64,000 nucleotides of DNA from Pristiophorus japonicus. Taxonomy: Eukaryota. Positions 1 through 64,000 of this stretch are shown in pieces. The notes below the pieces were generated by a model. That model did no database searches, was not told the DNA's origin, and saw only the letters and a list, made by a program, of their open reading frames with translations. Within the stretch, counting starts at the first letter, position 1, and every line of letters begins with the position of its first letter. The stretch lies in the NCBI RefSeq assembly GCF_044704955.1, contig NC_091995.1, positions 26,474,001 to 26,538,000 on the forward strand, read 5' to 3'. Made by a program: the position numbers and the translations under genes.

Positions 1-2986
1 CACTTGGTCCCAGAGGCACGACGCATTCACCACAAGGCGCGAGCGGTAGCTCACATGATGAGGAAGAGAGTGGAAATCGAGCTGGACAGACTGCAATGCG
101 AGGGCATCATCTCCCCAGTGGAATTCAGCGAGTGGGCCAGCCCGATTGTTCCAGTACTCAAAAGTGATGGCACGGTCAGGATTTGCGGCGATTATAAAGT
201 TACTATTAATCATTTCTCGCTACAGGACCAATACCCGCTACCTAAGGCAGACGACCTATTTGCGATGCTGCCAGGAGGCAAGACATTCACCAAGCTAGAC
301 CTGACTTTGGCCTACATGACGCAGGAGCTGGAGGAATCTTCGAAGGGCCTCACCTGCATCAACACGCACAAGGGACTGTTCATCTATAACAGAGGCCCAT
401 TTGTAATTCAGTCGGCTGCAGCGATCTTCCAGAGAAACATGGAGGGCCTACTCAAGTTGGTACCACTTTTTCAGGACGATATATTGGTCACGAGTCGGGA
501 CACTGTTGAGCACCTACAAAACCTGGAGGAGGTCCTCCAGCAACTGGATCGTGTAGGGCTGCAGCTGAATAGGTCAAAATGCATCTTCATGGCAACAGAA
601 GTGGAGTTTTTGGGGAGAAAGATCGCGGCGGACGGCATTCGGCCCACAGACACCAAGACAGAGGCTATTAGGAATTCGCCCAGGCCACAGAACACCACGG
701 AGCTGCGGTCATTCCTGGGACTCCTCAAATATTTTGGTAACTTCCTACCGGGGTTAAGTACCCTTTCAGAGCCCCTACATGTGTTATTGCGCAAAGGTGA
801 GAACTGGGTATGGGGAAAAAAACAAGTAATTGCTTTTGAGAAGGCCAGAAACAACAAGCTGCTTGTATTGTGTAACCCGTGTAAAAGACTTGTGCTAGCA
901 TGTGACGCATCGTGACATGGAGTCGGATGTGTATTATAACAAGCTAACATTGCGGTGAAGTTGCAACCTGTCGCTTATGCTTCCAGGAATTTGTCTAAGG
1001 CCGAGAGGGCCTACAGCATGATTGAGAAAGAGGCATTAGCGTGTGTGTTCGAGGTAAAGAAAATGCATCAGTACCTGTTTGGCCTCAAATTTGAGCTGGA
1101 AACCGATCACAAGCCCCTCACATCCCTGTTCGCTGAAAACAAGGGGATAAATACGAATGCCTCAGCCCGCATACAAAGGTGGGCCCTCGCGCTATCAGCG
1201 TATAACTATACCATCCGCCACAGGCCAGGCACCGAGAACTGTGCGGATGCTCTCAGTCGGCTACCATTGCACACCACGGGGATGGAAATGGCGCAGCCTG
1301 CAAACTTGTTGATGGTGGCGCAGCCCGCAGACTTGTTGATGGTCATGGAAGCATTTGAAAATGATAAATCAGCTGTCACGGCCCACCAGATTAGGACTTG
1401 GACCAGCCAAGATCCTCTGCTGTACCTAGTAAAAAAACTGTGTACTGCATGGGAGCTGGGCCAGCATCCCCGTTGAAATGCAAGAGCCAATCAAGCCGTT
1501 CCAGCGGCAAAAGGATGAGCTGTCCATTCAGGCAGACTGCCTGTTGTGGGGTAACCGCGTAGTGCTACCCAAAAAGGGCAGGGACATGTTCATCTCGGAT
1601 TTCCACAGCACACACCCGGGTATAGTAATGATGAAAGCGATAGCCAGATCCCACGTGTGATGGCCCGGTATCGACTCTGACTTAGATTCCTGTGTACGGC
1701 AGTACAGCGTATGTGCTCAGTTGAGCAATGCGCCCAGAGAGGCACCACTAAGTTTGTGGTCCTGGCCCTCCAGACCATGGTCGAGGATCCATGTCGACTC
1801 TGCGAGTTCGTTTCTCGGTAAAATGTTCCTGGTGGTGGTGGATGCTTTTTCAAAATGGATTGAATGTGAATTAATGTTGGGAAGCAGTGCCACTGCCACC
1901 ATTGAAAGCCTGAGGGCCATGTTTGCCACCCATGGCCTGCCTGACATACTGGTCAGTGACAACGGGCCATGTTTCACCAGTGCCGAATTTAAAGAATTCA
2001 TGACCCGCAATGGGATCAAACATGTCACCTCGGCCCCATTTAAAGCAGCCTCCAATGGGCAGGCAGAGCCGGCAGTACAAACCATCAAACAGCGCCTTAA
2101 ACGAGCCACAGAAGGCTCACTCCAAACCCGCCTGTCCCGAATACTGCTCAGCTACCGCACGAGACCCCACTCGCTCACAGGGGTGCCCCCGGCTGAGCTA
2201 CTCATGAAAAGAACACTTAAAACCAGACTCTCGCTGGTTCGCCCCAACCTGCATGATCAGGTAGAGAGCAGGCAGCAGCAACAAAAAGTAAACGATGGTC
2301 GCACCACTGTGTCACGGGAAATTGATCTGAATGACCCTGTGTATGTGCTAAACTATGGACATGGTCCCAAGTGGATCACGGGCACGGTGATAGCTAAAGA
2401 AGGGAGTAGGGTGTTTGTAGTTAAACTAGACAATGGAAAAATTTGCAGAAAGCACCTGGACCAAACGAGGCTGCGGTTCACAGACTGCCCTGAACAACCC
2501 ACAGCAGACACCACCTGTTTCGAGCCCACAACACACACCCAAAGGATCAATGACACCACGCCGCACCAGGAAATCGAACCCATCACGCCCAACAGCCCAG
2601 CAAGGCCAGGCTCACCCAGCAGCCCTGCAGGGCCAATAACACACCAGCCCAGCGAGGGCACAGCCAACACACCAGAACAGACATTTGTACCGAGGCGGTC
2701 CACCAGGAAAAGAAAGATTCCCGACCGCCTCACCTTGTAAATAGTTTTCACTTTGACTTTGGTGGGGGGGAGTGATGTTGTGTATCTGTAAAGCATGCAC
2801 TCCCATGTTCCGCCACCAGGGAGCACATCCCCTGAAGTCCCAAAGGAACCCAGCTTCCCTTGGGAGCACTGTATATAAGCCGGTCCCAAAGGCCTGTTCC
2901 TCACTCTGGAGTGTCTTATTAAAGACTGAGGTCACTGTTACTTTAACCTCCCTGTGTGCAGCCTCATCTGTGTTAGGAACACAATA
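1..2986 (+). mobile_element. Ty3/Gypsy LTR retrotransposon, 3' half (degenerate pol: RT-RNase H-integrase, PPT, 3' LTR)
   Basis: ORFs 4-915 (WASPIVPV, RICGDYK, KLDL, FQDD), 955-1476 (RNase H: PVAYASR, EKEALA, ETDHKPL) and 1478-2740 (integrase: HSTHPG zinc-finger remnant, WSRIHVD, LVSDNGPCF, SNGQAE, GPKW). RT-RH-IN order is the Gypsy order. Stops and frameshifts lie between the ORFs. Confidence 0.95.
2776..2986 (+). repeat. 3' LTR (~211 bp) of the Gypsy element
   Basis: Preceded by a purine tract GGTGGGGGGGAGTGA. Begins TGTTGTGT and ends ACACAATA (one mismatch from the perfect inverted ACACAACA). Contains TATATAA (~2872) and ATTAAA (~2918). Confidence 0.85.
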
Positions 2987-6139: not shown

Positions 6140-7595
6140 TTGAAAGTAATTAATATAGATGTACCCATGCTTAAACGCAATAAATACATTTTCACCCATC
6201 CCTTCAAATCAATAAATACATTTGTCCCCTTCCCTTTAAATCAATAAATAAATTTGCACCCATCACTTTCAATCAATAAATACACGTGCAACCTTCCCTT
6301 TAAATCAATCAATAAATTTGCACCCATTCCCTTTAACTCAATAAATAAATTTGCACACAAAATTAATTAATACATTTGTACCCATCCCTTTGAATCAATC
6401 AATATGTTTGCAACCTTCCCTTTAAATCAATAAATAAAGTTGTGTCCTTCCCTTTAAATCAATAAATACATTTGTACCCACATCCTTTAAATCAATAAAT
6501 ATGTTTGCTGCCTTCCCTTTCAATCAATAAATAAAAGTTCACCCATCCCTTTAACTCAATAAATACATTTTCACACAAAATTAATTAATACATTCATACC
6601 CATCCCTTTAAATCAATCAATATGTTTGCAACCTTCCCTTTTAAACAATAAATAAATGCACACCCATCTCTTTAATCAATAAAAAAATGTGCATCCATCT
6701 CTTTAAATGTATAAAAACATTTGCAACCTTCTCTTTAAATCAATAAATAAATGTACGCCCATCCCTTTAATCAATAAATAAATTTGCAATCTTCCCTTAA
6801 AGTCAATAAATACATTTACAACCTTCCCTATAAATCAATCAATGAGTGTGCACCTATCCCTTTAAATCATCAATATATTTGCACCATACCTTTAAATCAA
6901 TACATATTTTTGCACTGACCCTTTAAGTCAATAAATAAATGTGCAACCATCCCTTTAAGTCAATAGATAATGAGCACCCATCTGGTTCAATCAATAAATA
7001 AATGTCCACCCATTCCCTTTAAATCAATAAATAAGTTTGAAACTTTCCCTTTAAATGAATACATAAATTTGCAACCTTCCCTTTAAATCAATCATTAAAT
7101 GTACATACATCCCTTTAATCAATAAATAAATGTGCACCAGCCCTTTAAATAATATACTTGCATTCTTCCCTTTAAATCAATAAATATATTTGTACTATCC
7201 ATTTAAATCAATTAATATTTTACACTCTTCCCGTTAAATTAATAAGTAAATGTGCACCCATCCATTTAAATTAATAAATGAATGTGCAACCTTCCCTTTA
7301 AATCAATTAATATTTTTGCACTCTTCCCTTTAAATCAATGAATAAATGTGCACCCATCCCTTTAAGTCAAGGAATAGAATTGTGCCCTTCCCTTTAAATA
7401 TGTAAATAAATGTGCACCCATCCCTTTAAATCAATAAATTAATGTGCAACATTCCCATTAAATCAATAAGTAAATATGCACCCATCCCTTTAAATTAATA
7501 AATAAATTTGCAACCTTCCCTTTAAATCAATAAATAAGTTTGAAATCTTCCCTTTATAACAATAAGTAAAATTGCACCCTTCCCTTTAAATCAAT
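6140..7595. repeat. AT-rich minisatellite, ~32-bp unit (CCCTTTAAATCAATAAATAAATTTGCACCCAT), about 45 degenerate copies
   Basis: Direct reading of the recurring CCCTTTAAATCAATAAAT motif at ~32-bp spacing. Confidence 0.9.
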
Positions 7596-20670: not shown

Positions 20671-21437
20671 AGAGAATGTAGGTTTGATTTACGGAAATAT
20701 TATTTAAAAAAAAATATTGTTCATGGTTAAAAGGCTTATACTTTTCTTATAGAAAGGATTTGAAACCTTTTTTTGAAAATCTGTTTGTGAGCTGAATTCA
20801 GAAGGACATTAACCCTGATGAAAATGCGCGTCTGTCTAATGCAGTCCTTGCCCTCAGCCTGTCTTCTGTATTTTTGGTCTCTCCCAATAATCATCTTTGG
20901 GGAATGTGATCTTAAAATAAAATGTTGAAATGTAAAATGTATCTGTTCGATGTTATTATATGAACGAGATGAGGCGCTTATTAAAAGCGGTGAAATGGTC
21001 AATGGGACAGCAGGCCCGGGCCCTGATCAGGAAGCACAGGATCATTGTACCTGGGGCGGTGGGATCTCTCCGGGACACATGGAGCTGGGGCTGGAGATAG
21101 AGAGAGATGGAGCTGAACCCGGGCCCAGGTCTCTGTCGGTCTGCACACTCTGCCCGTTATTTTACTGATACTTCAAACACACCCACTTGACTTGTTTTAG
21201 AATAAATTATATTGACTGAAGGCTATATATTTTTCTTAATGTGAAATGTTTAGATTTCTATGTTAACGATCTGATAATTTTCTGAATTCGAATAATTTTT
21301 GAAACAATTTCGCCACTTGTTTCTGGTCACTTCCGCTGCAAACCCAAACCCCGGATCACAAGAGAAACTTCCCTCCATTTCATTCACTTCAACTCGATGT
21401 CCCTTTATTGTGATATTGGAGCGACCCGGAGCTCACT

Positions 21438-26141: not shown

Positions 26142-27574
26142 TAAAACATCACAAGATGTTTCACGGGAGTATTATACAACAACATTTGACGCCAAGCCAC
26201 ATAAGGATTAGGGCAGATGACCAATGGCTCGGTCAAAGAGGTAGGTTTTAAAGAGCGACTTAAAAGAGGAAAGAGAGGTGGAGAGGTTTTGGGAGAGAAT
26301 TCCAGAGTTTCGGGTCTAGACGGCTGAAGGCAGGGCCACCAATGGTGGAGCGATTACAATTGGGCAGTAAAACCCTTGTTCTGAATTGTAAACGAGAACT
26401 AATGCGGTCCTGACCCCAGCGTAACTCTGGCGAAAGCGCCTATTGGAATCCCTCCGCTGTGAATTCCTGCCCTGCCCTCTGCTCACTGCGGTTGTGAGTC
26501 GCCCTTCCGACACTTTTGTGTTTTGCCCACAAGTCTTTTACTGTGATTTCCCGGCCTGTTCTGTGAAGTGGCTTTTTCAAGGCCTCACTCCCGACCATCA
26601 GTTGCTCCAGTTTGTATAGCTCACGGCTCATTGACCACACCCAGTGTTATTGGAAGCACGGTCCTGTCTATTATAGCGGTTACTGGTACTTGCCGACATG
26701 TGGACTTCAAGTAAAGAAATAACAAATGATTCTCATTTAATGTTCAGTGTGCTGAGCACCTTAAACCTTAGAGCATTGAATTCAGATTTAGTCCCTTCAC
26801 TGCCACAGGATCATTGAGACACAAACAGCGGGCAAAATGAGGGGGACAGAAATAATCTCTGGGTGTGGATCAATATGGGAAGAAACAACTCGGATTTACA
26901 CCTTTCACAACCTCAGGACGGCACAAAGTCTGTCACAGACAATGAAGTAATTTACAGTGTAGTCACCGTTTAATGTCAGGAAATGCAGAGCCAATGTGTG
27001 CTCAGCAATGTTCCAGATATAGCAAGGAGATAAATTACACTTTTGTTTGTGATCTTAATTGAGGGGTAGTGTGCAGAATGTATTTTGATGTACGGAAATA
27101 TGATAAAAATAGCAATAATTGGTCATGGTCAAAGGGGCAATTCATTTCTCATAGAAAGTACTTACAATAGTCTGTTTGCAAACCCAAGTCGGAAAGACAT
27201 CAACTCTGTCTGTCTAATATAATCGCCGCCCTCAGCATGTCCTCTGTATGTTTGCTCTCTCCCAATAACCAAGCTTGGGGATGGGATCGTAAATAAACTG
27301 TTGAAATGAAAAAAAAATGTTCTTTCGATGTTATTATAGGAACGAGATGAGGCCGCTTATTGAAAGCGGTGAAATGGTTAATGGGACAGCAGGCCCGGGA
27401 TTTGCTCAGGAAGCACAGGATCATTGTACCTGGGGAGGTGGGATCTCTCCGGGGCACATGGAGCTGGGGCTGGAGATAGAGAGAGATGGAGATGGACCCG
27501 GGCCCAGGCCTCTGTCGGTCTGCACACTCTGCCAGTTATTTTACTGATACCTCAAACACACCCACTTGAGTGGT

Positions 27575-33774: not shown

Positions 33775-33980
33775 GTGGGAACTGAATATTCAGGTTATTT
33801 GACACTGGGAATTGAATATTCAGGACATTTGACACTGGGAACTGAATATTCAGGCCATTGACACAGGGAACTGAATATTTAGGGTATTAGACACTGGGAA
33901 CTGAATATTCAGGCTATTGACACAGGGAACTGAATATTCATGATAATTGACACTGGGAACTGAATATTCAGGAATTGACA
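33775..33980 (+). repeat. 29-30-bp tandem repeat (CTGGGAACTGAATATTCAGG..TTGACA) x7 at the 5' end of a CR1
   Basis: Direct reading. The last unit runs into CR1 endonuclease sequence (AGGAAGGATAGACAGGAAGGTAAAGGAGG). Confidence 0.88.
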
Positions 33981-38950: not shown

Positions 38951-39261
38951 GTGGAATCTTAGTCTGCTCAGGCACTGATCATAATTCCGATCCCTGCATG
39001 AGAATTGGTGGTGGAAGACCCTTTTTCAATATGGCCCTGCGCCCCCACGTCTGTGCAGCCGTCTTGCTCTGTGTTGTTCCTCATTGGCTTCTCTGCTGCT
39101 CTGCTGCCTCCTCCACCTCTGCAGGCTGCTGCTGCCCAGCATCTGCCTCCGCTGCAGGTTGCCTCCTGTCCTGCTGGCCCAGTATCTGGTGCGGGAGATC
39201 CGCGTACCTCACTCTCCTCCTTAGGGCATGCCTTTGTTGAGGGCCTTCCTGTGGCAGCTCC

Positions 39262-40245
39262 CTGGTCTCCCCTCTGTAACCATCTCCCTGGCCTCCCCTC
39301 TGTCACCATCTCCCTAGTCTCCCCTCTGTCACCATCTCCCTGGCCCTCCCTCTGTCACCATCTCCCTGGCCTCCCCTCTGTCACCATCTCCCTAGTCTCC
39401 CCTCTGTCACCATCTCCCTGGCCCTCCCTCTGTCACCATCTCCCTGGCCTCCCCTCTGTAACCATCTCCCTAGTCTCCCCTCTGTTACCATCTCCCTGGC
39501 CCTCCCTCTGTCACCATCTCCCTGGTCTCCCCTCTGTCACCATCTCCCTGGCCCTCCCTCTGTCACCATCTCCCTGGCCTCACCTCTGTCACCATCTCCC
39601 TGACCCTCCCCTCTGTCACCATCTCCCTGGCCCTCCCTCTGTCACCATCTCCCTGGCCTCACCTCTGTCACCATCTCCCTGGTCGCCCCTCTGTCACCAT
39701 CTCCCTGACCCTCCCCTCTGTCACCATCTCCCTGCCCTCCCCTCTGTCGCCATCTCACTGACCCTCCCCTCTGTCACAATTTCCCTGACCTTCCCTCTGT
39801 CACCATCTCCCTGACCTTCCCTCTGTCACCATCTCCCTGGTCTCCCCTCTGTCACCATCTCCCTGGCCCTCCTCTCTGTCACCATCCCCCTGACCCTCCC
39901 TCTGTCACCATCTCCCTGACCCTCCCCTCTGTCACCATCTCCCTGACCCTCCCCTCTGTCACCATCTCCCTGACCTTCCCTCTGTCACCATCTCCCTGAC
40001 CCTCCCCTCTGTCACCATCTCCCTGACCCTCCCTCTGTCACCATGTCCCTGGCCCTCCTCTCTGTCACCATCCCCCTGACCCTCTCTCTGCCACCATCTT
40101 CCTGACCCTCCCCTCTGTCACCATCTCCCTGACCCTCCCCTCTGTCACCATCTCCCTGACCCTCCCCTCTGTCACCATCCCCTGACCCTCCCCTCTGTCA
40201 CCATCTCCCTGACCCTCCCCTCTGTCACCATCTCCTGGACCTCTC
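39262..40245. repeat. Pyrimidine-rich minisatellite, 26-27-bp unit (CTGTCACCATCTCCCTGRCCCTCCCCT), about 37 copies, inside the Harbinger element
   Basis: Direct reading. Confidence 0.93.
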
Positions 40246-44470: not shown

Positions 44471-44769
44471 AAGCCCAGTTGGCCTATCGAGCCTGTGCCA
44501 GCTCACCGAGAGAACGATTCAATCAGTCCTAATCCCCTGACCTCTCCCCGTACCCTTTCAAATGTTCCTTCTTCAAATATTTATCCACTTCCCTTTTAAG
44601 GCATGATCTCATTGAATGGCAGAATGTGCTGGAGGGGCTGATTGGCCTATTCCTGGTCCTTCCACCACTGTTTCTGACAGGGGACTGCATGTTCTAACAA
44701 TGCTCTGTATTAAATATTTCTCCCAAGCTTTCTCGTTGTTGTTTGGATGAGTTTTCTAAGTGTTTTCTA

Positions 44770-46245
44770 AGAGTTCCTATGGACTGGAGGGTGGCTAATG
44801 TAACACCACTTTTTAAAAAAGGAGGGAGAGAGAAATCAGGGAATTATAGACCAGTTAGCTTGACATCAGTAGTGGAGAAAATGTTGGAATCAATTATTAA
44901 AGATGAAATAGCAGTGCATTTGGAAAGCAGTGACAGGATCGATCCAAATCAGCATGGATTTATGAAAGAGAAATCATGCTTGACAAATATTCTAGAATTT
45001 TTTGAGGGTGTAATTAATAGAGCAGACAAGGGAGAACCAGTGGATGTGGTGCATTTGGACTTTCAAAAGGCTTTTGACAAGGTCCCACACAAGAGATTAG
45101 TGTGCAAAATTAAAGCACATGGTATTGGGGGTAATGTATTGACATGGATAGAGAACTGGTTGGCAGATAGGAAGCAGAGAGTCAGGATGAATGGCCCCTT
45201 TTCAGAATGGCAGCCAGTGACTAGTGGAGTAGTGCAGGGTTCAGAGCTGGGACCCCAGCTATTTACAATATACATTAATGATTTAGATGAAGGAATTGAG
45301 TGTAATATCTCCAAGTTTACAGATGACATTAAGCTGGATGGTGGTGTGAGCTGTGAGGAGGATGCTAAGGGGCGCAGGGTGACTTGGACAGGTTAGGTGA
45401 ATGGACAAATGCATGGCAGATGCAGTATAATGTGGATAAATGTGAGGTTTGGTGGCAAAAACAGGAAGGCAGAATATTATCCGAATGGCGACAGATTAGG
45501 AAAAAGGGGAGGTGCAATGAGACCTGTGTGTCATGGTACATCAGTCATTGAAGTTTGGCATACAGGCACAGCAGGCGGTGAAGAAGGTAAATGGCACGTT
45601 GGCCTCCATAGCTATGGGATTTGAGTATAGGAGCAGGGAGGTTTTACTGCAGTTGTACAGAGCCTTGGTGAGGCCTCACCTGGGATATTGTGTTCAGTTT
45701 TGGTCTCCTAATCTGAGGAAGGACATTCTTGCTATTGAGGGAGTGCAACGAAGGTTCACCAGACTGATTCCCGGGATGGCAGGACTGACACATGAGGAGA
45801 GAGTGGATCGACTGGGCGTGTATTCACTGGAGTTCAGAAAAATGAGAAGGGATTTTATAGAAACATATAAAATTCTGACGGGTTTAGACAGGTTAGATGC
45901 AGGAAGAATGTTCCCAATGTTGGGAAAGTCCAGAACCAGGGGTCACAGTCTAAGGATAAGGGGTAAGACATTTAGGACCGAGATGAGAAGAAACATCTTC
46001 ACCCAGAGAGTGGTTAACCTGTGGAATTCTCTACTGCAGAAAGTTATTGAGGCCAGTTCGTTAGATATAGACGAGGGAGTTAGATATGGCTCTTACGGCT
46101 AAAGGGATCAAAGGGTATGTTGAGAAAGCAGGAAAGGGATACTGAGATGAATGATCAGCCATGATCTTATTGAATGGTGGTGTAGGTTCGAAGGGCCAAA
46201 TGGCCAACTCCTACACCTATTTTCTATGTTTCTATGTTTCTATGT
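44770..46245 (+). mobile_element. CR1 LINE RT region with (TTTCTATG)3 tail
   Basis: ORFs 44743-45396 and 45533-46102 carry canonical CR1 RT motifs. Confidence 0.93.
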
Positions 46246-46544
46246 AAGTCCTCTAGTTATTGATTCACAGACCAGTGGAAAAATTATTTCTGTTTTATCA
46301 TAAGATTTGCATTAAACTGTTGTAATGAAATTGTTTCTTCTGTATGGTTCGACTGCCTTTAGTCAGTTGTCAGTTTGTAATTAGGCTCAGAAATTTGCCT
46401 ATTATCTGGGAGAGGTCGGAACACTCACTATGTTGAGGAGATATTTGCCTATTATTTGTAATGGCCGAGGTCATCATCTGGTACATTCCTCAGGTCTTGT
46501 GGTGCCGAGTAATTTAATGAACAACCAGCACTCCTTTCCCTCCA

Positions 46545-50110: not shown

Positions 50111-50944
50111 TCTAAAGGCAAACATTTGCGAGTCGTGGCTCTCATCTACACTAGTTACTGTGCCACCTAACTTAGTGTCGTCAGCAAACCTGGATATACA
50201 GCTCTTTTGGGATGGAAGTTCAGTCTGTCGCCGCCCTGTTCGCGCCCCGGAGGAGCAGTAATGGTGGTGGATATCATTTTCGGGTGGGCGGCCAACTTGC
50301 AGCGCCCCACCGGGACATTCGCTGCTGGTTTTGCGGGGGTGCGGTGTATTACCGTCCGGGAGAGGTGAGCCGGTGTGCAAAGCCCCCGGTTGCTACACCG
50401 GTCTTCGATTTGTTTTCTGGGGGACCCTAGTGGGACGGCCTGGGACAGCGGACAGTCTGAGCTGTACTAGCGGCAGTAAGGGAAGGAATGTCTACCTGAG
50501 GTAAGTGCGCTGGTCTTTAATTTTTTTAATTTGGTGATTTATGTTTATGCGGTGTCAGTCAGGTATTGGGAATATATTTGGTGTTACTTTGCTGATTATT
50601 TCCCCCCCAGGGAAGCCTCTCTTAGGACACTCCAAGGCTGGCTCTTTCGGTTAGTCCACGATGATGACACATTATTTAAAATTATATTTAAATAGTACAA
50701 TTCAACCATGTTCCCGCTTGTTAAAGGGGCTCAAACACTGGGACCTGCAAGTTAACCAAACACGTTTCAGAAAACCGAACAAAGCAAATCACACACAGTA
50801 TTACAGGTGGGTTTTAATCATTACACAAACAGTGGCAGCTGTGTAAATGAATCCGCTTCCCCCCATAGCAACAGATGCTGCTAACTTTGACCCTTCTCAG
50901 AGCCTTTGATAATAATCTTCAAATGTTCACCAGCTGTTGCCCAA

Positions 50945-51249
50945 TCTCGGCCTTTTGGCTAAGATCTGCATAACTAACCTGACCAGCCACCATGACTTCC
51001 GGGTGGTTTCTCCCTGGTCAGGAAGGTATATGCTTACATTTTTGTAAACAGGAGGTGGGTGGGATGGCCCATCCACCTCCATGGCACGAACCTGGTATTG
51101 CAGTACTTCCAGGAACGGTGCAGTGGCTCTAGGCCTTTTGGCTAAGAGCATTGGCGCAGAGTGATCCTTGACTGGTGCAGGGTGACCTCTGGCGTTTGTG
51201 ACTTGACAAAGAATTGGAAACGATTGGCTACGAATTTATAAAAAAAAAA
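50945..51249 (+). mobile_element. U2(/U1) snRNA-derived poly(A)-tailed retroposed element (SINEU-like, or a retrocopy of a variant snRNA)
   Basis: TCTCGGCCTTTTGGCTAAGATC matches U2 nt 7-28. Sm site ATTTTTG at 51038. ACCTGGTATTGCAGTACTTCCAGGAACGGTGCA matches the U2 3' stem-loop IV. Second U2 stem-loop I at 51126-51149. A-tail at 51240-51249. Absent from the paralogous site at ~58805. Confidence 0.85.
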
Positions 51250-51584
51250 TAAACACAATATAATTAACAATAAAAGTATGTAACTTAAAGTAACTATAAT
51301 CTGCTGTGCTTTTTGGACAGACAGCTGTCCGTCCAGCCCCGAAGCGCCCCCGCCGTCCTTCACTTTTTGACTGACAGGCGACAAGACCCGCCCCTGTCAA
51401 GCTCCACACCCCCCCCGGCCCCGAATCATTGCCCACCTGGTGCCGAGATGTAGGACCTGAGCCCCATACTCCGCTGATTCCCTCGGTGACTCGCTCCCCC
51501 CAGGACTCGCTAGGCCGACCGGGCCTCCCGCTGAGCTACGAGCCCTGAGCGGCGGGCAGTCAGGAGTCGGAGGGCTTTGGTGCC

Positions 51585-52968
51585 GAGAGAGAGAGAGGTA
51601 GGGGGTAGGGAGGGAGAGAGAGAGAGAGAGAGAGAGGCGTGGGAGTGGGGATGGAGAGAGAGAGAGAGAGAGGGTGGGGAGGGAGAGAGAGAGAGGGTGG
51701 GTAGGGAGGGAGAGAGAGAGAGGGTGGGTAGGGAGGGGGAGAGATAGGCGAGGGGTGGGGAGGGAGAGAGAGAGGCGTTGGGGTTGGAGGAAGAGGAGAG
51801 AGGCGTGGGGTGGGTAGGGAGAGAGAGAGGCAGTGGGTGGGGAGGGAGAGGAGCGAGGCAGGGGGTGGGGAGAGAGAGGCTGGGGGTGGATGAAAGAGAG
51901 GTTGGGGAGGGGGAGGGAGAGAGAGGCAGTGGGTGGGGGGAGGGAGAGGAGAGAGGCAGTGGTTGGGGAGGGAGAGGCAGTGGTTGGGGAGGGAGAGGCA
52001 GTGGGTGGGGGGAGAGAGAGGCAGTGGGTGGGGAGGGAGAGAGAGAGGCAGTGGGTGGGGAGGGAGAGAGAGAGGCAGTGGGTGGGGAGGGAGAGGGGAG
52101 AGGCTGGGGGTGGATGAGAGGGAGAGGCGGGGGGTGGGGAGAGAGAGGCAGTGGGTGGGGGGAGAGAGAGGCAGTGGGTGGGGAGGGAGAGAGAGAGGCA
52201 GTGGGTGGGGAGGGAGAGGGGAGAGGCTGGGGGTGGATGAGAGGGAGAGGCGGGGGGTGGGGAGAGAGAGCGGGGCAGTGGGTGGGGGGAGGGAGAGGAG
52301 AGAGGCAGTGGGTGGGGGGAGGGAGAGGAGAGAGGCAGTGGGTGGGGGGAGGGAGAGGCAGTGGGTGGGGAGGGAGAGAAAGAGGCAGTGGGTGGAGAGG
52401 GGAGAGGCTGGGGGTGGATGAAAGAGAGAGGCAGTGGGTGGGGAGGGAGAGAAAGAGGCAGTGGGTGGAGAGGGGAGAGGCTGGGGGTGGATGAGAGGGA
52501 GAGGCGGGGGGTGGGGAGAGAGAGAGGCAGTGGGTGGGGGGAGGGAGAGAGGCAGTAGGTGGGGGGAGGGAGAGGAGAGAGGCAGTGGGTGGGGGGAGGG
52601 AGAGGCAGTGGGTGGGGGGAGGGAGAGGAGAGAGGCAGTGGGTGGGGGGAGGGAGAGGCAGTGGGTGGGGAGGGAGAGAAAGAGGCAGTGGGTGGAGAGG
52701 GGAGAGGCTGGGGGTGGATGAAAGAGAGAGGCGGGGGGTGGGGAGGGAGAGAGAGAGAGTCAGTGGGTGGGGAGGGAGAGGAGAGAGGCAGTGGGTGGGG
52801 AGGGAGAGGGGAGAGGCTGGGGGTGGATGAGAGAGAGAGGCGGGGGGTGGGGAGGGAGAGAGAGAGGCAGTGGGTGGGGAGAGAGAGGCGGGGGGTGGAA
52901 GAGAGAGAGAGACTGTGGGGTGAGGGGGAGAGAGCGAGAGACTGTGGGGTGAGGGGGAGAGAGCGAGA
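51585..52968. repeat. G/A-rich minisatellite (GAGAGGCAGTGGGTGGGGAGG-type units)
   Basis: Direct reading. Confidence 0.92.
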
Positions 52969-54947
52969 GGTTGGAGGGGTGGCCGGGAGTTGGTAGCGGG
53001 GAGGGTGTGGTACCCCAATCGTCATCCCTGACGTTGAAGCCGGGGGACTTGGAGCTGTTTTTCGGCCCGGTCTCGCCATGCCTCCCGGTGCCTGGGGCAG
53101 AGGTGGACGCCCGTCCTCTGCCGCTTCCCGACCCGGCATCCCAGGAGGAGCTTAGGAGGGACTCCTCTGCCGACGATCCTGGGGGTGGGATCGGGGTGGA
53201 GGTAGGGCCGGATGGTGTGGCCGGGCCGTTTGCCGTATCCCATGGGTCGACGGAGCGGCTGCTGGCGGCGACCTCCCGGAGGGGGACGGGGACTCATTGG
53301 GGAGTGCGGGAGAAGATTTGGAGTCCATCGCCAGTGAGGTGGTGGATCTCCTTGTGCCCGCCGCCGAGTCCCCCCTCACTCCTGCCAAGGAACTCCAGGA
53401 CTTTTTGGCGCAATGCCAGGGTCGCCGCAACAGAGCCCATCTGGCCCTGGACAAATGGCCCGAGCCGGCGCTGCTCATCAGGTCCATCCGCGCCGCCGTT
53501 AAAACCATGGCCGCGGTCGGGCTCTTATCAAAACCGGAAAGCCTTGAGCTGCCCCAGCTCACAACGTTCCTTGTTGGGTTGCTTAAGGAGTAGAGGTCAT
53601 CAAACAACTTCACTCCCCCCCCCCCCTCCTATCCCCACCATAGTTTAAGGTAGAGATTGCACTATGCTCTTGTCATGAAGATAACCATAGCCAGCCTCAA
53701 CATCAATAGCGGCAGAGAGGCAGGTCGTAGATTTAACAATTTTTCGCACATTTGCGGTGTGCTTCCTGCAAGAAACCCACACCGTTCCGGGAGACAAGAC
53801 CACGTGGCTCCTGGAATGGCAACGAGAGGTCCGCATGAGCCACCTCACTGCCACTTCTTGTGAGGTGGCTATCTTGCTGGCCCCACATTTTCAGCCAAAG
53901 ATCTTGGGAGTCGAGGAGCCTGTGCCAGGCCCTTGCTCCATGTCATGGTTCGCCTGGGGGACGTGCCGCACCATTTAGTGAACGTGTACAGCCCCCAGCC
54001 CGGCCCGCAGCAAGTGCACTTCTTCGAAGAAGTGTCCATTCTTCTAGGTTCCGTCGACGTCGGCGACTACATTGTCCTCGGGGGGGATTTTAACTGCACC
54101 CTTGAGGCGAGGAACCGCTCCAGTGCCCCGCAGAGCATGACTGCGATAGAGAAGTTGAGCGACCTGTTCGGGTCCTTCGACTTGGTGGACGTCTGGCGAA
54201 ATCTCCATCCCGACTCCAGCGCCTTTACTTGGGTGAGGCCTGGAAGAGGATGGTCCAGAATCGACCGCCTTTACGTGTCTCGGGCGTACGTCTCCTGCGT
54301 TCTGGCGGCCTCCATGTGGCCAGCGGCGTGTTCGGACCACCACCTGGTGCGGGCGGAGCTCGCTCCGCTCTGCGCGAGGACGGGGTCCGCGTACTGGCAC
54401 TTTAACAACCAGCTGCTGGAGGATGAGCGGTTCCAGGATTCGTTCCGTCGCTTCTGGGCCAACTGGAGAAGGAAGCAGGGGGGGGGCTTCCCCTCCTTGA
54501 GGTTAAGGTGGGACATCTCTTCTGTCAAAAGTATGCGAAAGGGTTGCCCGTGAGGCGGGTGGCCAGGGTGGGGTGCCTGGTGAAGGAGGTGCTCGACCAG
54601 GAAGCCCGTCTGGGTCAAGTCGTCGAGGACCCGGCCCTGCGGACGGTGTAGGAAGCGAAGAAGGCCGTGCTAAAGGACCTGCAGCTCGTCGGGTTCGGAG
54701 GCTCATTCGTGAGGTTGCGGATCTGGTTCCTTCGGGACCAAGACTGCGGCTCCCCCTTCTTCTATTCGCTAGAAAAAAGATAGGGGGTCCGTAAGCAGCT
54801 CTTGACGCTGTTGGCCGACGATGGATCCCTGGTCTCGGATCCGGAGGGCATCAGTATCAGGGCCCGAGAATATTACGGGGCTCTGTTCTCTCCGGATCCG
54901 TCCAGCGAGGAAGCGCGTAGTGTTTTGTGGGAGGACCTGCTGAAGGT

Positions 54948-56080
54948 CATAGAAACATAGAAAATAGGTGCAGGACTAGGCCATTCGGCCCTTCTAGCCT
55001 GCACCGCCATTCAATGAGTTCATGGCTGAACATTCAACTTCAGTACCCCATTCCTGCTTTCTCGCCATACCCCTTGATCCCCCTAGTAGTAAGGACCTCA
55101 TCTAACTCCTTTTTGAATATATTTAGTGAATTGGCCTCAACAACTTTCTGTGGTAGAGAATTCCACAGGTTCACCACTCTCTGGGTGAAGAAGTTCCTCC
55201 GCATCTCGGTCCTAAATGGCTTACCCCTTATCCTTAGACTGTGACCTCTGGTTCTGGACTTCCCCAACATTGAGAATATTCTTCCTGCATCTAACCTGTC
55301 TAACCCCGTCAGAATTTTAAATGTTTCTATGAGGTCCCCTCTCATTCTTCTGAACTCCAGTGAATACAAGCCCAGTTGATCCAGTCTTTCTTGATAGGTC
55401 AGTCCAGCCATCCCGGGAATCAGTCTGGTGAACCTTCGCTGCACTCCCTCAATAGCAAGAATGTCCTTCCTCAGGTTAGGAGACCAAAACTGTACACAAT
55501 ACTCCAGGTGTGGCCTCACCAATGCCCTGTACAACTGTAGCAACACCTCCCTGCCCCTGTACGCAAATCCCCTTGCTATGAAGGCCAACATGCCATTTGC
55601 TTTCTTAACCGCCTGCTGCACCTGCATGCCAACCTTCAATGACTGATGTACCATGACACCCAGGTCTCTTTGCACCTCCCCTTTTCCTAATCTGTCACCA
55701 TTCAGATAATAGTCTGTCTCTCTGTTTTTACCACCAAAGTGGATAACCTCACATTTATCCACATTATACTTCATCTGCCATGCATTTGCCCACTCACCTA
55801 ACCTATCCAAGTCGCTCTGCAGCCTCACAGCATCCTCCTCGCAGCTCACACTGCCACCCAATTTAGTGTCATCCGCAAATTTGGAGATACTACATTTAAT
55901 CCCCTCATCTAAATCATTAATGTACAGTGTAAACAGCTGGGGCCCCAGCACAGAACCTTGCGGTACCCCACTAGTCACTGCCTGCCATTCTGAAAAGTAC
56001 CCATTTACTCCTACTCTTTGCTTCCTGTCTGACAACCAGTTCTCAATCCACATCAGTACACTACCCCTAATCCCATGTGC
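54948..56080 (-). mobile_element. Young CR1 inserted into Tx1 ORF2
   Basis: Uninterrupted 337-aa ORF 55040-56053 (FADD) and CATAGAAACATAGAAA tail. The Tx1 sequence resumes on both sides (..GAAGGTCA | GCCCGGAG..). Confidence 0.95.
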
Positions 56081-58900
56081 CCGGAGGGAGCCGAAAATCT
56101 GGACACTCCGCTAAGCCTGGCGGAGCTGACCAGTGCCCTCGACCGGCTCTCGAGGGGAAAGTTCCCGGGGTTGGACGGGCTGACCGTGGAGTTCCACAGA
56201 TGTTCTGGGACATCTCGGGGGCGACTACGTGTGGGTCTGTGGGAAAGTCTGGCAACCAGGGAGATGCCCCTCTCTTGGCGCAGGGCAGTCATCGTCCTAA
56301 GAAGGTCGATCGCCGCCTACTTAAGAACTGGCGCCCGGCCTCCCTCCTCAGCACGGATTACAACATTTTTGCCAGGGTGATGTCTGCTCGCCTTGGCGCC
56401 GTGCTGGACCACATGATCCACCCCGACCAGACCTACACGGTCCCGGGCCGGACAATCCACGACAACATCCATCTGGTCCGGGACCATTCCCAGGAGGCTA
56501 GTCTGCCGGTTGCTTTCCTTTCCCTAGACCAGGAGAAGGCGTTCGATAGGGTGGTCACAAATATCTGTTCGGTACTCTGCGCGCTTTCGGATTCGGGACG
56601 CATTTTGTCGGCCGGATTCGACTTTTGTACGCCGCCGCGGAGTGTCTGATTAACGTTAATGGGTCCTTGATGGCGCCCCTTCGCTTTAGGAGAGGGGTGC
56701 ACCAGGGATGCCCCATGTCCGGCCAGTTATATGCCTTATGCGTGGAGCCTTTCCTGCGCCTCTTGCGGACGAGGTTGACGGGACTGGCTCTGCAAGGGCC
56801 GGGCGTGGAGGTCGTCCTCTCGGCTTACGCCGATGACGTGCTCCTCATGGTCGAGGATCCCGTTGAACTGCGGAGGAGTGAGTGCCAGGAGATTTACTCA
56901 GCCGCATCCTCCGCCAGGATCAATTCGGAGAACTGTTCCAGACTCCTGGTGGGTCAGTGGCCGGGTGGACTCCCTGCCGGAGGAGCTCAGGCCTTTTGCC
57001 TGGAGCACGACCCATCTCCTCTATCTGGGAGTCTACCTTAGCCCCGACGAGGGAGCCTGGCCGGCGAACTGGCAAGAGCTGGAGGCCAAGGTCGCCGCTC
57101 GCCTAGGGCGCTGGACAGGACTGCTCTGAGTGCTGTCCTACAGGGGTCGAGCGCAAGTCATAAATCAGCTGGTGGCCGCTATGCTGTGGTACCGGCTGGT
57201 CACTTTGACCCCTCCCCCTGCGTTTGTCGCCAAGATACAGAAGAAGCTGGTGGACTTCTTCTGGAACAACAAGAAGCACTGGGTCTCTGCCGCGGTTGTG
57301 AGTCTCCTGTTAGGGAGGGCGGTCAGGCGTTGGTGTGCGTCAGCGCCCAGCTAGCGACTTTCCGTCTTCAGACCCTGCAGAGACAACTCTACGTCGAGCC
57401 CCCTCCTAGGTGGCGTGCGCTGGCGACGTATTTCTTCCGCCAGCAGCACAGCCTCAACTACGACACGCAGCTCCTGTTTGTGAGCTCGGGGGGCATCAGG
57501 ACCGCCATCCAGGGGCTGCTGTCTTTTACCAGGAACTCATCAGGGTCTGGAACAGAGTCGCCACCAAGTGCAGCTCTCCCACTTCTGGAGTGGTGGCTGT
57601 CCCACAGGAGACATACCTCCACGACCGAGGTTTTAGGTGGCAGGCAGACGAGAGGGCTGTGGCTGGCGAGGTGACCAGGGTCAGGGACCTGCTCGATGGC
57701 GGAGGAGCGAGCTGGATGGCACCAGACGTGCTGGTACAGCGCCTAAACTGGGCTGATGTCCGGCACGCGGCCAATGCCATCGAGTCGCTAAAAACAGCTC
57801 TCGGCTCTGACTCCGTTAGGTACATCGAGGAGGCTCAAGCACGTGGGGCGATCCCATCCGAACTGACCCCACCTGGACGGAATTCCTTATCGGCGCCAAG
57901 CCCCGAAACCTCCCTTGGGAGCCGGCGCCTTAAAATCCCCTCCGTGCCTTTCAGTTCGGCGCAGAGGGGTTTCCTGTATGGGCTGCTCTTGCACACTCTC
58001 CACTTTGCACCACCTTGCCGTCCGGAGGAGGCGGGTGTCCCCGATAGAGTACACTCTACGCGGGAGTCCTCCCACGATTTATCGGGGACTTGGCCTGGAG
58101 CGTGGTGCACGGAGCATTCCCATGCAACAAATTTTCAAGCCGGTTCACGGGCTCCCAGGCCGCCTGCAATTTCTGCGGTCTGGAAGTGTCCGTGTTCCAC
58201 GTTTTTACTGAATGTGCGAGGTTGCAGCCCCTGTTCCATTATTTGAATGGGCTGCTCCTCAAATTCTGTTTGCACTTCAGTCCCACACTCCTGATTTTTG
58301 GGCACCCTGTGCGGAGGGGAGCGGGTAGGTCCGAGGACCTCCTCGTAGGACTGCTCCTGGGCACGGCCAAGGAGGCCATCAGCCGGACCAGACAGCAGGC
58401 GGTCGAGGGGGACGTTCAGCCCAACTGCCTGCCTCTCTTCCGCGTGTACATCCGAGCCAGGGTGTCCCTGGAGATGGAGCACGCGGTGTCCACCAGTACG
58501 CTCACGGCCTTCCGTGAGAGGTGGGCGCCAGAGGGACTGGAGTGCATCATCACCCCCGGCAACCAAATTTTAATTTGATCATTTAAGTTTAATTTGTTTA
58601 ATTTGCCGGTTTTAGTGCCCTCCCCATCACCGGCCCCCGCCTTTTAGTCAGGGGGCACTTGTATAATTTGTGTTTTTAGTGCCTTAAACTGCACCCCCTC
58701 CCCCATGGCAACAGATGCTGCTGACATTGACCCCTCTCGCTTTCACTATTTAAAGTGTGTCAGCGTCTTTGATGCTAATCTCCAGCTGTTCACCAACTAT
58801 CCCAATCAGCCAATGTAAACACAATATAATTAACAACAACATTATATAACTTAAAGTAACTATTTGTGCTGCACTTTTTGGACCGACAGCTGTCCATCCA

Positions 58901-61900
58901 GAGGCTGGGGGCGGGGGCGGGGGCGGGGCGGGTAAAGAGATGGAGAGAGAGGCTGGTGGGGGGGTGGCGGTGGGAGAGAGAGAGAGGCTGGGGGGGTGGG
59001 GGAGAGAGAGAGAGGGTGGGGGCGGGGGCGGGGCGGGTAAAGAGATGGAGAGAGAGGCTGGTGGGGGGTGGGGGAGAGAGAGAGAGGCTGGGGGGGTGGG
59101 GGAGAGAGAGAGGCTGGGGGGGTGGGGGAGAGAGAGAGAGGCTGGGGGGGTGGGGGAGAGAGAGAGAGGCTGGGGGGGTGGGGGAGAGAGAGAGGCTGGG
59201 GGGGTGGGGGAGAGAGAGAGGCTGGGGGGGTGGGGGAGAGAGAGAGAGGCTGGGGGGGTGGGGGAGAGAGAGAGAGGCTGGGGGGGTGGGGGAGAGAGAG
59301 AGGCTGGGGGGGTGGGGGAGAGAGNNNNNNNNNNNNNNNNNNNNNNNNNNNNNNNNNNNNNNNNNNNNNNNNNNNNNNNNNNNNNNNNNNNNNNNNNNNN
59401 NNNNNNNNNNNNNNNNNNNNNNNNNNNNNNNNNNNNNNNNNNNNNNNNNNNNNNNNNNNNNNNNNGGGGAGAGAGAGAGGCTGGGGGGTGGTGGGGGAGA
59501 GAGAGAGGATGGGGGGGGTGGGGGAGAGAGAGGATGGGGGGGGTGGGGGAGAGAGAGAGAGGCTGGGGGGGGTGGGGGAGAGAGAGAGAGGCTGGGGGGG
59601 GTGGGGGAGAGAGAGAGAGGCTGGGGGGGGTGGGGGAGAGAGAGAGGCTGGGGGGGGTGGTGGGGGAGAGAGAGAGGATGGGGGGAGAGAGAGAGGCTGG
59701 GGGGGTGGTGGGGGAGAGAGAGAGGATGGGGGGGGGGGGAGAGAGAGAGGATGGGGGGGTGGGGAGAGAGAGAGGATGGGGGGGGGGGGGAGAGAGAGAG
59801 GATGGGGGGGGTGGGGGAGAGAGGATGGGGGGGTGGGGGAGAGAGGCTGGGGGGGTGGGGGAGAGAGAGAGAGGCTGGGGGGGGTGGGGGAGAGAGAGAG
59901 AGGCTGGGGGGGGGGTGGGGGAGAGAGAGAGAGGCTGGGGGGGGGTGGGGGAGAGAGAGAGAGAGGCGGGGGGGGTGGGGAGAGAGAGAGAGGCTGGGGG
60001 GGTGGGGGAGAGAGAGAGGCTGAGGGGGGGGTGGGGGAGAGACAGAGGCTGGGGGGGGTGGGGTGGGGTGAGAGAGGGGCTGGGGGGTGGGGGAGAGAGA
60101 GAGGCTGGGGGGGTGGGGTGGGGGTGGGGGAGAGAGAGAGAGGCTGGGGGGGTGGGGGAGAGAGAGAGGCTGAGGGGGGGTGGGGAGAGACAGAGGCTGG
60201 GGGGGGGGTGGGGGGTAGAGAGGCTGGGGGGGGCGGGGGAAAAGAGAGAGGCTGGGGGGCGGGGGGGAGAGAGAGGCTGGGGGGGCTGGGGGGGAGAGAG
60301 AGGCTGAGGGTGGGGGGAGAGAGGGGCTGAGGGGGGGGAGAGAGGGGCTGGGGGGGAGAGAGAGGCTGAGGGGGGGAGAGAGAGGCTGGGGGGGTGGCGG
60401 GGGAGAGAGAAGCTGGGGGGGCGGGGGGGAGAGAGAAGCTGGGGGGCCGGGGGGGAGAGAGAAGCTTGGGGGGTGGGGAGGAGAGAGAGGCTGAGGGGGG
60501 GAGAGAGGCTGGGGGGCTAGGGGGGAGAGAGAGGCTGAGGGGGGGGAGAAAGAGGCTGAGGGGGGGAGAGAGAGGCTGGGGGGTTGGCGGGGGAGAGAGA
60601 GGCTAGGGGGGGCCGGGGGGGAGAGAGAGGCTGGGGGGGGCGGGGGGGAGAGAGAAGCTGGGGGGGTGGGGGGAGAGAAAAGCTGGGGGGGGTGGGGGGA
60701 AGAGAGAGGCTGAGGGGGGGGGAGAGAGAGAGACTGAGGGGGGGGGAGAGAGAGGCTGGGGGGGAGAGAGAGGCTGAGGGGGGGAGAGAGAGGCTGGGGG
60801 GTGGTGGGGGAGAGAGAGGCTGGGGGGGTGGCGGGGAGAGAGAAGCTGGGGGGCACAGGGGGAGAGAGAAGCTGGGGGGCGCGGGGGGAGAGAGAAGCTG
60901 GGGGGCGCGGGGGGAGAGAGGCGGGGGGCGGGGGAGAGAGGCGGGGGGGCGGGGTGAGAGAGGCAGGGGGGGCGGGGGTAGAGAGGCAGGGGGGAGAGAG
61001 GCTGGGGGGGCGGGGGAGAGAGAGGCTGGGGGGGCGGGGGGTAGAGAGGCGGGGGGGGCGGGGGAGAGAGAGAGGCGGGGGGGGCGGGGGAGAGAGAGAG
61101 GCGGGGGGGGCGGGGGAGAGAGAGAGGCGGGGGGGGCGGGGGAGAGAGAGAGGCGGGGGGCAGAGAGAGAGAGAGAGAGGCTGGGGCGGGGGGGGGGGGG
61201 GAGAGAGAGGCTGGGGCGGGGGGGGGGGAGAGAGAGGCTGGGGCGGGGGGGGAGAGAGAGGCTGGGGCGGGGGGGGGGGAGAGAGAGGCTGGGGCGGCGG
61301 GGGGGGGAAGAGAGAGAGAGAGAGGCTGGGGTGAGGGGGAGAGAGAGAGGCTGGGGGGAGAGAGAGAGAGGCTGGGGCGGGGGGAGAGAGAGAAAGGCTG
61401 GGGTGGGGGGGAGAGAGAGAGGCTGGGGGGGGCGGGAGAGAGAGAGGCTGGGGGGGGCGGGGGAGAGAGAGAGGCTGGGGGGGCGGGGGAGAGAGAGAGG
61501 CTGGGGGGGGCGGGGGAGAGAGAGAGGCTGGGGGGAGAGAGAGAGGCTGGGGGGGGAGAGAGAGAGAGGCTGGGGCGGGGGAGAGAGAGAGGCTGGGGCG
61601 GGGGGGGGGGAGAGAGAGAGAGAGAGAGAGGCTGGGGCGGGGGGGAGAGAGAGAGAGGCTGTGGGGGGGAGAGAGAGAGGCTGGGGGGGGAGAGAGAGAG
61701 GCTGGGGGGGGAGAGAGAGAGGCTGGGGCGGGGGGGATAGAGAGAGAGGCTGGGGCGGGGGAGGGAGAGAGAGAGGCTGGGGCGGGGGGGAGGGAGAGAG
61801 AGAGGCTGGGGGATGGAGAGAGAGATGCTGGGGGATGCAGAGAGAGAAGCTGGGGGGGATGGAGAGAAAGAGAGGCTGGGGGGGTGGAGAGAGAGAGAGG

Positions 61901-63313
61901 CTGGGGGGTGAAGGGAGAGAAACTGGGGGGGGGGGAGAGAGGCTGTCGGGGTGAACGAGAGGCGGGGGGAACGAGAGGAGGGGGGGAACGAGAGGCGGGG
62001 GGGAGGAAAGAGGCGCTGGAGAGGTGGGGGGGGGTAGTATAGAGAGCTGTGTGGTGGGGGGGTGGAGGAGAGAGAGAGTCTGGGGCGGAGGGGGGAGAGA
62101 GGCTGGGGGGGAGAGAGAGCGAGGCGGGGGGGAGAGAGAGAGGCTGGGGCGGGGGGGGAGAGAGAGAGGCTGGGGCGGGGGGGGAGAGAGAGAGGCTGGG
62201 GCGGGGGGGAGAGAGAGAGGCTGGGGCGGGGGGGAGAGAGAGAGAGGCTGGTGGGGGAGAGAGAGAGGCTGCGGGGGGGAGAGAGAGAGGCTGCGGGGAT
62301 GGAGAGAGAGAGGCTGGGGGGATGGAGAGAGAGAGGCTGCGGGGGGGAGAGAGAGAGGCTGGGGGGATGGAGAGAGAGAGGCTGGGGGGATGGAGAGAGA
62401 GAGGCTGGGGGGATGGAGAGAGAGAGGCTGGGGGGTGGAGAGAGAGAGGCTGGGGGGTGGAGAGAGAGAGGCTGGGGGGGAAGGGGCTGGGGAGGGGGGG
62501 GAGAGAGGCTGTAGGGGGGAACGAGAGGCGGGGGGGGAACGAGAGGCGAGGGGGAACGAGAGGCGGGGGTGAGGAAAGAGAGGCTGGGGGGGGAGGAGAA
62601 GAGAGTGGCCGGGGGGGGGGGGAGAGAAGAGTGTGGCTGGAGAGGTGGGGGGGGTAGTATAGAGAGCTGTGTGGTGGGGGGGTTGGAGGAGAGAGAGGCT
62701 GGGGTTGCGGGGATGAGGGAAGTAGAGAGAGGTTGGGTATGGGGGAAGAGAGAGAGAGAGAGAGTCTGGGGGTGAGAGAGGCTGGGGGGGTTGAAGAGAG
62801 GGGGGTTGGAGAGGGTGCCTGGTGGGGGGAGGTAGGCTGGGGGGAGGGGGATAGGAGGGCGAGGCTGGGGGAGGTGTAGGAGAGAGAGAGGCTGCGGGTT
62901 GAGAGAAAGTGGCTGGGGTGCGGGGAGAGGGAGGCTGGCTGGGGTGGGGGGGATGAGAGGGAGGCTGGCGGGGAGAGAGAAAAAGTGACAGGGGTGGGGG
63001 AGAGGGAAGAGGGGTCGCGGGTCCGAGGTGGGGGGGCACAGGAAGAGTGAGGCCGGTGGAGGGGTAGGGGGCTGGAAGAGAAAGAGAGAGATAGAGAGAG
63101 AGTGTGAGGTGTTGGGGTGGGGGCTGATGGCGGTGGAGAGTGAGGCTGGGGGTGGGGATGATAATGGGGCTGGGGGGGGAAAGAGAGAGGTTGGGGTGGA
63201 ATAGAGAGAGGCTGGGGATGTGGGGTGAGGGGCTGGGTGGCAGGAGACTGAGTCTGGGGGTGGGGGAGAGGGAGAGAGAGGTTGGGGAGGAGGGGGAGGA
63301 GAGAGAGGCGGGG

Positions 63314-63360
<47 letters not shown>

Positions 63361-64000
63361 TGGGGGTGGGGGAGAGGGGCTGTGGGGGGGGGTGGGGAGA
63401 GAGGCTGTGCGGGGGGGTGGAGAGAGGGGCTGGGGGGGAGAAGAGAGGGGCTGGGGGGGAGAAGAGAGGGGCTGGGGGGGAGAAGAGGGGGCTGCGGGGG
63501 GGAGGAAAGAGAGGCTGGGGGGCAGGAAAGAGTGGCTGGGGGTGCTGGGGGGAGGAGAGAGGCTGGGGGGGAAGAGAGGGGCTTGGGGGGGAGAAGAGAG
63601 GGGCTGGGGGGAAGAAGAGGGGGCTGCGAGGGGGGGAGGAAAGAGAGGCTGGGGTGGGAGGAAAGAGTGGCTGGGGGTGCTGGGGGGGAGGAGAGAGGCT
63701 GGGGGGCTGAGGGAGGCTGGGGGGTTGGTTGGAGAGCGCGTCTGGTGGGGGCAGTAGGCTGGGAGGAGTCGGGTAGGAGTGCGAGGCTCGGGGGGTGTGG
63801 TAGGAGAGAGAGAGGCTGCAGGGGAGAGAGAAAGTTGCTGGGGTGGTGGGAGAGGGAAGAGGGGCCGCCGGTGTGAGGGGGTCACAGGAAGAGTGAGGCC
63901 AGTGGAGGGGTGGGGTAGGGTGGTGAGGGAGGGAAGAGTGAGAGTGAGAGTGAGAGTGAGAGACTGAGGTGTTGGGGGGAGGGAAGGAGGATGGGGGAGA
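58901..64000. repeat. Large strand-asymmetric G/A-rich tandem tract (unit ~GAGAGAGAGGCTGGGGGGGTGGGG)
   Basis: Direct reading; continues to the window end. Confidence 0.95.
59325..59464. other. Assembly gap (~140 N)
   Basis: Run of N. Confidence 0.99.

Follow-up and report, generated by a model that had tools for sequence, protein, structure and literature searches.

A poly(A)-tailed insertion built from U2 spliceosomal RNA pieces, likely a SINEU-type retroposon outside crocodilians

Introduction

The stretch of DNA analysed here (64 kb in full, referred to as the window) carries on its forward strand a poly(A)-tailed insertion of 303 bases, which lies within 50945-51249 and is a mosaic of U2 spliceosomal RNA pieces and other sequence. 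This raises the question of whether the locus holds a copy of a retroposon that bears small nuclear RNA (snRNA) sequence at its head, the product of a single chimeric event, a working snRNA gene, or a decayed U2 pseudogene. The initial annotation, made from the letters of the DNA, had described a chimeric U2/U1 element that would be either SINEU-like or a copy of an undescribed structured RNA of the Sm class. Among vertebrates, formal descriptions of SINEs headed by snRNA sequence have so far come from a single order, the crocodilians. The crocodilian SINEU elements show recurrent addition of snRNA pieces at the 5′ end, for which template switching is the proposed cause, and a 2015 survey did not find SINEU outside crocodilians (PMC4494074).

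Results

A U2-like module with a replaced middle

Read from 5′ to 3′, the insertion begins with U2 stem-loop I and a foreign hairpin. These are followed by the 3′ half of U2, which carries the Sm site together with stem-loops III and IV, then by another U2 5′ piece, and finally by a body of ~90 bases and an A10 tail (Table 1). All six features described in the initial annotation were recovered where it had placed them, in the letters, the RF00004 alignment or the folding.

Table 1. Features of the insertion, its flanks and the corresponding empty site (window coordinates).
Feature	Position	Strand	Basis
Left target flank	50844-50946	+	Local alignment: homologous to insert-free 58685-58807; homology stops at CCCAATC in both
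U2 positions 7-28 (stem-loop I)	50945-50966	+	Rfam RF00004 alignment; hairpin fold z = -3.0
Foreign stretch in place of U2 positions ~29-84	50967-51027	+	Treated as insertion by the U2 model; fold z = -2.9
U2 single-stranded region with Sm site ATTTTTG (51038-51044)	51028-51050	+	Letters and RF00004 alignment
Shortened U2 stem-loop III, unbroken 13-bp helix	51051-51080	+	Model alignment; -28 kcal/mol, z = -4.95
U2 stem-loop IV and 3′ end	51084-51124	+	Model alignment
Second U2 5′ piece, positions ~1-28, head-to-tail on the preceding U2 3′ end	51125-51149	+	RF00004 positions 7-26 at 15 bits; fold z = -3.6; 20-base self-match
Body, ~90 bases	51150-51239	+	Unlike any Rfam family or other window DNA; fold z = -0.67
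A10 tail	51240-51249	+	Letters
Right target flank	51250-51335	+	Homologous to 58816-58900, ~87% identity
AGCCAATG (eight bases) at the empty paralogous site, missing from the filled one	58808-58815	+	Local alignment

The U2 identity of the pieces was established with the Rfam covariance model RF00004, using its curated gathering score of 46 bits as the criterion. Running this model, as the initial annotation had proposed, returned a match at 50938-51128 (+) covering model positions 1-192, and because this match scored 53 bits against the required 46, with E = 1e-7 for the window, it is not a chance resemblance. U2 was moreover the sole Rfam family to reach its gathering score in the whole 64-kb window. 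Together with the A10 tail and the paralogous site that lacks the insert (see below), the match bears out a U2-derived, A-tailed insertion of composite, SINEU-like architecture.

The first piece is identical to the RF00004 consensus at positions 7-28, so that the element starts at U2 position 7 and some 6 bases are absent from the U2 5′ end. Further downstream, the ATTTTTG motif aligns with the Sm site of the model, and the hairpin in the position of stem-loop III consists of 12 Watson-Crick pairs and one G-U pair closed by an AUGG loop, a three-base deletion with respect to the model making its helix uninterrupted. Stem-loop IV and the U2 3′ end are aligned by RF00004 through 51128. Between these parts, U2 positions ~29-84, which comprise the branch-site recognition sequence and stem-loops IIa and IIb, are gone and are replaced by ~61 bases, 56 of which the model draws as unaligned insert. 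The module as a whole nevertheless measures 191 bases against 192 model positions, and the U2-like spacing of stem-loop I, Sm site and stem-loop IV noted initially thus holds. With regard to the properties of a functional U2 gene, the locus reaches the model score, while the branch-site sequence and stem-loops IIa/IIb are absent; where such a gene has its own snRNA promoter and a 3′ box without poly(A), the locus has an upstream flank common to the empty site and an A10 end.

The complete element folded far better than its shuffled versions (z = -4.86), as did each snRNA-derived hairpin alone. The initial annotation had taken the retained pairing as an argument against simple decay of a U2 copy. 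A single copy cannot bear this argument out, because a young retrocopy keeps its pairs without selection and because the Rfam consensus of stem-loop III is itself degenerate. Runs of four or five T residues were found at 50953, 51039 and 51136. No reading frame extends through the element on the sense strand, and one antisense frame is open for ~100 codons; searched against two protein collections, the latter gave no match in one and three low-complexity matches in the other, and thus no real relatives. The CpG observed/expected ratio of the element (0.43) equals that of the window and is therefore uninformative on its age.

The middle piece and the question of U1

The stretch that replaces the U2 middle folds into one hairpin of 9 bp plus 5 bp. 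Its letters look similar to the 5′ end and both stem-loop I arms of human U1. Searches with the Rfam U1 model, applied to stretches of 601, 91 and 61 bases and accepting E values up to 10, gave no match, which leaves the "U1" label of the initial annotation unsupported by that model. Alignment of the middle piece to the U1-derived 26-mer quoted in PMC4494074 was weak (p ~0.01 from shuffles), with 44 of the 1821 tiles of the window scoring equally. We regard a U1 origin of the middle piece as likely but unproven.

A second U2 5′ end joined to the first U2 3′ end

Downstream of the module, 51128-51147 alone matches U2 positions 7-26, and a 20-base self-match links this second U2 piece to 50945-50964. 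The bases ahead of 51128 agree with the consensus of U2 positions 1-6 at 10 of 14 positions. In this second copy, stem-loop I is lengthened by two G-C pairs, to 5+4 bp, and both U2 5′ pieces stop at U2 position 28. The junction at 51122-51128 joins the U2 3′ end, two or three bases short, straight to a U2 5′ end.

The body that follows is not significantly structured. It gave no Rfam match, nothing similar to it was seen in the rest of the 64-kb window, and neither an open reading frame nor an RNA family accounts for its ~90 bases. As for the tail of the element, no LINE in the window has the same tail, and no tail fragment was found elsewhere in the window.

The target site and its empty paralogue

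The flanks of the insertion belong to a repeat whose two copies in this region are ~85-87% identical. The second copy, at 58.8 kb, is without the entire 303 bases, and the boundaries are sharp: left homology ends at 50946/58807 and right homology starts at 51250/58816. The empty paralogous site reported initially is therefore real, the flank alignments bracketing 58807/58816 with the whole insert missing. The TC at 50945-50946 fits the target flank as well as the U2 piece; one to three bases of microhomology to the target are possible at the 5′ junction.

No target-site duplication was found at the insertion. The AGCCAATG gap reflects either the loss of eight target bases at insertion or later divergence of the paralogues; such a loss is seen in part of the crocodilian SINEU-2 insertions (PMC4494074). 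At the 3′ side, the A10 tail adjoins TAAACAC and the downstream target is A-rich. A tail abutting TAAACAC points to T-rich DNA at the bottom-strand nick, which is what a LINE endonuclease of the apurinic type would leave for priming on poly(A).

Some further observations concern this surrounding. The 7-mer ATTGGCT (51224-51230), whose end lies 10 bases ahead of the A-run, reads in reverse complement as 58808-58814 and in this form covers seven of the eight bases that are present at the empty and absent at the filled site, a coincidence with a chance of a few percent. G-rich satellite arrays with a unit of ~26-27 bases (consensus like GGGGAGAGAGAGAGGCTGGGGGGGGTG) occupy 51585-53000 and 58900-64000, and each array is preceded by a ~190-base unit common to both, the U2 mosaic sitting inside one copy of that unit. 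An assembly gap (59325-59465) lies within the region of the second array.

Copies of the element

No second copy of the element was present in the 64-kb window. To look beyond it, 32 sampled 31-mers of the element were looked up in sequencing runs. Four runs of one sample each held 56-66% of the 32 31-mers, three runs from another study (109-165 million letters) held 66%, 28% and 19%, and a run of a second organism held 19%. Because a single-copy locus of a large genome should be near-absent from runs so small, these shares favour a multi-copy element, provided that the runs are not RNA or enriched libraries, in which case they would reflect expression or sampling bias instead. An even share of ~60% of the 31-mers would be expected if abundant relatives of this copy existed and it differed from them at a few positions. 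The insertion probably belongs to a young multi-copy family. In metagenome contigs, the 18-base junction pattern gave three chance matches, which had no further similarity.

Other repeats in the window

The window is rich in other repeats. The 3′ parts of two CR1-like LINEs, comprising the reverse transcriptase domain, were found at 44743-46247 (+) and 54948-56080 (-); they are 86% identical and inverted with respect to each other, and their ends (46236 on the forward and 54948 on the reverse strand) share a conserved 3′ motif with (TTTCTATG)n behind it. CR1 tails of the (TTTCTATG)n type are typical of shark and ray genomes, in keeping with the shark-type host suggested initially. More diverged CR1-like copies lie near 9.0-10.0, 12.3-13.8, 16.0-17.3, 27.6-28.2, 29.2-30.2 and 35.2-35.8 kb. 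A second LINE at 53933-57041 (+) comprises an endonuclease domain (53933-54553) and reverse transcriptase pieces (56077-57041), split by the inverted CR1 fragment. Its reverse transcriptase fragment at 56077-56649 matches only unnamed sea-turtle proteins (~42-68% identical over the aligned parts), and its 3′ end may extend to the ~190-base unit at 58.7 kb.

Part of the pol region of an LTR retrotransposon, with reverse transcriptase, RNase H and integrase core domains, was located at 4-2740 (+). In addition, the segment 46955-47484 is repeated with ~84% identity at 20958, 24505 and 32288, and part of it with 94% identity at 27336; the segment 48129-48287 recurs beside these copies (17.8-33.1 kb) with a spacing of ~3.5 kb that suggests a large tandem unit. 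Further tandem arrays were seen at 6178-7595, 33776-33980 and 39258-40243, with units of 32, 30 and 26 bases, respectively.

Discussion

A probable inert retrocopy of a composite retroposon

Our preferred reading, which we hold with fairly good confidence, is that the insertion is an inert retrocopy of a composite, short, non-autonomous, snRNA-derived retroposon of SINEU-like kind, which grew by 5′ additions and was inserted by a LINE. Features of SINEU that were found here are a U2-derived head (positions 7-28 at the 5′ end), a length below 500 bp, the absence of coding capacity and a 3′ poly(A).

The strongest competing explanation would have the insertion arise as a one-off chimeric retropseudogene, in a single event with several template switches among a polyadenylated RNA, U2 and another small RNA. 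The element does occur as a single copy in the 64-kb window and combines a poly(A) tail with 5′ truncation and the absence of a promoter, and chimeras of this sort, made by L1 from U6, U1 and U2, are documented in mammals (PMC4494074). Four junctions in one event are improbable, however, and two further observations speak against a single event: both U2 5′ pieces stop at the same U2 position, and 31-mers from the composite were recovered from very small runs as well as from a second organism. We consequently judge a one-off origin unlikely.

Considerably less probable is that the locus holds a functional gene for an undescribed Sm-class RNA, or a recent retrocopy of such an RNA, which would be a U2-length chimera with a different middle but with stem-loops I, III and IV and the Sm site kept. 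The preserved length and spacing of U2 (191 bases against 192 model positions) would suit such an RNA, and so would the clean and strongly stable hairpins and the z of -4.86 for the whole element; clean hairpins are, however, equally expected of a young copy. The module lies in a poly(A)-tailed insertion, it has lost the branch-site recognition sequence, its T4/T5 runs would stop polymerase III, and no RNA run on record was found with its 31-mers. Furthermore, the upstream flank is common to the empty paralogous site, which means that the insert brought no promoter with it. The poly(A) tail, the missing promoter and the shared flank together make a gene for an undescribed structured Sm-class RNA at this locus improbable.

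Finally, U2 retropseudogenes are common in vertebrates (PMC4494074), but an ordinary decayed U2 pseudogene with a later unrelated insertion in its middle and a second U2 fragment adjacent by chance is hardly credible, given that all 303 bases are missing as a single block at the paralogous site, that the U2 parts have barely decayed (stem-loop I being identical to the consensus) and that the second U2 piece abuts the 3′ end of the first one exactly.

Comparison with known snRNA-derived elements

Returning to the composite retroposon, its closest counterparts by described anatomy are crocodilian. In SINEU-1C/H (Kojima 2015), a U2 piece is followed by U1, a short U2, a unique body and poly(A) (PMC4494074). 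Like it, the present element is short, non-coding and poly(A)-tailed, follows the order U2, possibly U1, short U2 and body, and contains T runs that speak against polymerase III. It differs in its elasmobranch-type host and in that the 3′ half of U2, from the Sm site to stem-loop IV, is part of it, the comparison being one of described anatomy rather than of 3′ body sequence. SINEU-3 corresponds to U2 minus ~50 bases after position 32, with the 5′ 32 and the later 83 bases kept (PMC4494074). Nearly the same internal U2 segment was lost here, where positions 1-28 and ~85-188 are kept, but the gap in SINEU-3 is a plain deletion, whereas here it is filled by ~61 foreign bases. Particular to SINEU-3 are also a 40-base unrelated 3′ end and a strong preference for one Mariner family (PMC4494074). 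More generally, SINEU copies carry poly(A), T runs and a tail common to no known LINE, and Tx1 LINEs are thought to move them (PMC4494074).

The element also shares properties with the chimeras made by L1 in mammals and with A-tailed U1/U2 retropseudogenes, in which snRNA joined by template switching, a poly(A) and LINE-mediated insertion are likewise found (Buzdin 2002 and Garcia-Perez 2007, as related in PMC4494074). Each of the mammalian chimeras described there goes back to a single event, and as a rule they show one junction and target-site duplications, whereas four junctions were found in the present insertion, duplication is absent, and there are indirect signs that near-identical copies are numerous. 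Keno (of the Tx1 group) and Utopia tie U2 sequence to Tx1-type retrotransposition and could supply transcripts from a U2 promoter (PMC4640811). However, they insert at U2 position 38/39 (PMC4640811), and the U2 pieces end here at position 28, so that Keno and Utopia do not directly explain the junction; no LINE of the Keno/Utopia type was seen in the window.

In the full-text literature, to which the search was directed (Repbase and Dfam lying outside it), no snRNA-headed SINE was found described in cartilaginous fish. Judged by analogy with the crocodilian elements, the insertion likely represents a new SINEU-type family outside crocodilians.

Proposed origin and insertion

A possible history of the element starts from an inner part, consisting of U2 positions 1-28, the body and the A-tail, which would be an older retroposon whose transcript began at the U2 start site. 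The outer module may later have been gained at the 5′ end of this inner element, through jumps onto snRNAs by a LINE reverse transcriptase that had copied its template up to the 5′ end. The junction between U2 3′ end and U2 5′ end at 51122-51128 is the mark expected of such an end-to-end template jump, and we know of no genomic U2 genes arranged with a 3′ end directly followed by a 5′ end. Counting against simple end-to-end jumps, two of the four junctions are internal to snRNAs.

Insertion of the copy at this locus would then have proceeded by target-primed reverse transcription, starting at a nick in T-rich DNA (TTTA/C on the bottom strand), and the 5′ joining may have cost ~6 bases of the element and perhaps 8 of the target. 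Most likely, the enzyme was supplied by an endonuclease-type LINE of the L1/Tx1 group, able to use poly(A) templates. As internal T runs would stop polymerase III, we propose that source copies depend on RNA polymerase II and on a promoter external to the element, possibly that of a U2 gene.

Implications

For genome annotation, elements of this type have a practical consequence, as pipelines based on Rfam will miscall such copies as U2 genes, the present copy exceeding the gathering score of the U2 model.

The promoters of U1 and U2 genes lie outside their transcribed part. Given such external promoters, the transcription of snRNA-headed SINEs is a puzzle, and a second, apparently young family in a lineage far from the crocodilians would permit a search for master copies and their promoters. 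It would also allow the partnership with Tx1 to be tested, and could be used to examine whether losing the U2 segment with the branch-site sequence and stem-loop II is a rule, and whether retention of the Sm site and of the protein-binding hairpins brings the RNA into contact with the LINE machinery more readily.

More tentatively, with a chance that we place somewhat short of even, the insertion may stand for a young family of snRNA-mosaic retroposons that arose independently in elasmobranchs and is possibly still active. Mobilised by Tx1-type LINEs and transcribed from promoters of the U2 type, this family would have converged with crocodilian SINEU on the U2-U1-U2 order and on the loss of U2 positions ~29-84. 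If so, this convergence would point to a mechanistic rule in the copying of snRNAs by reverse transcriptases, or to selection acting against those copies in which the branch-site sequence is retained.
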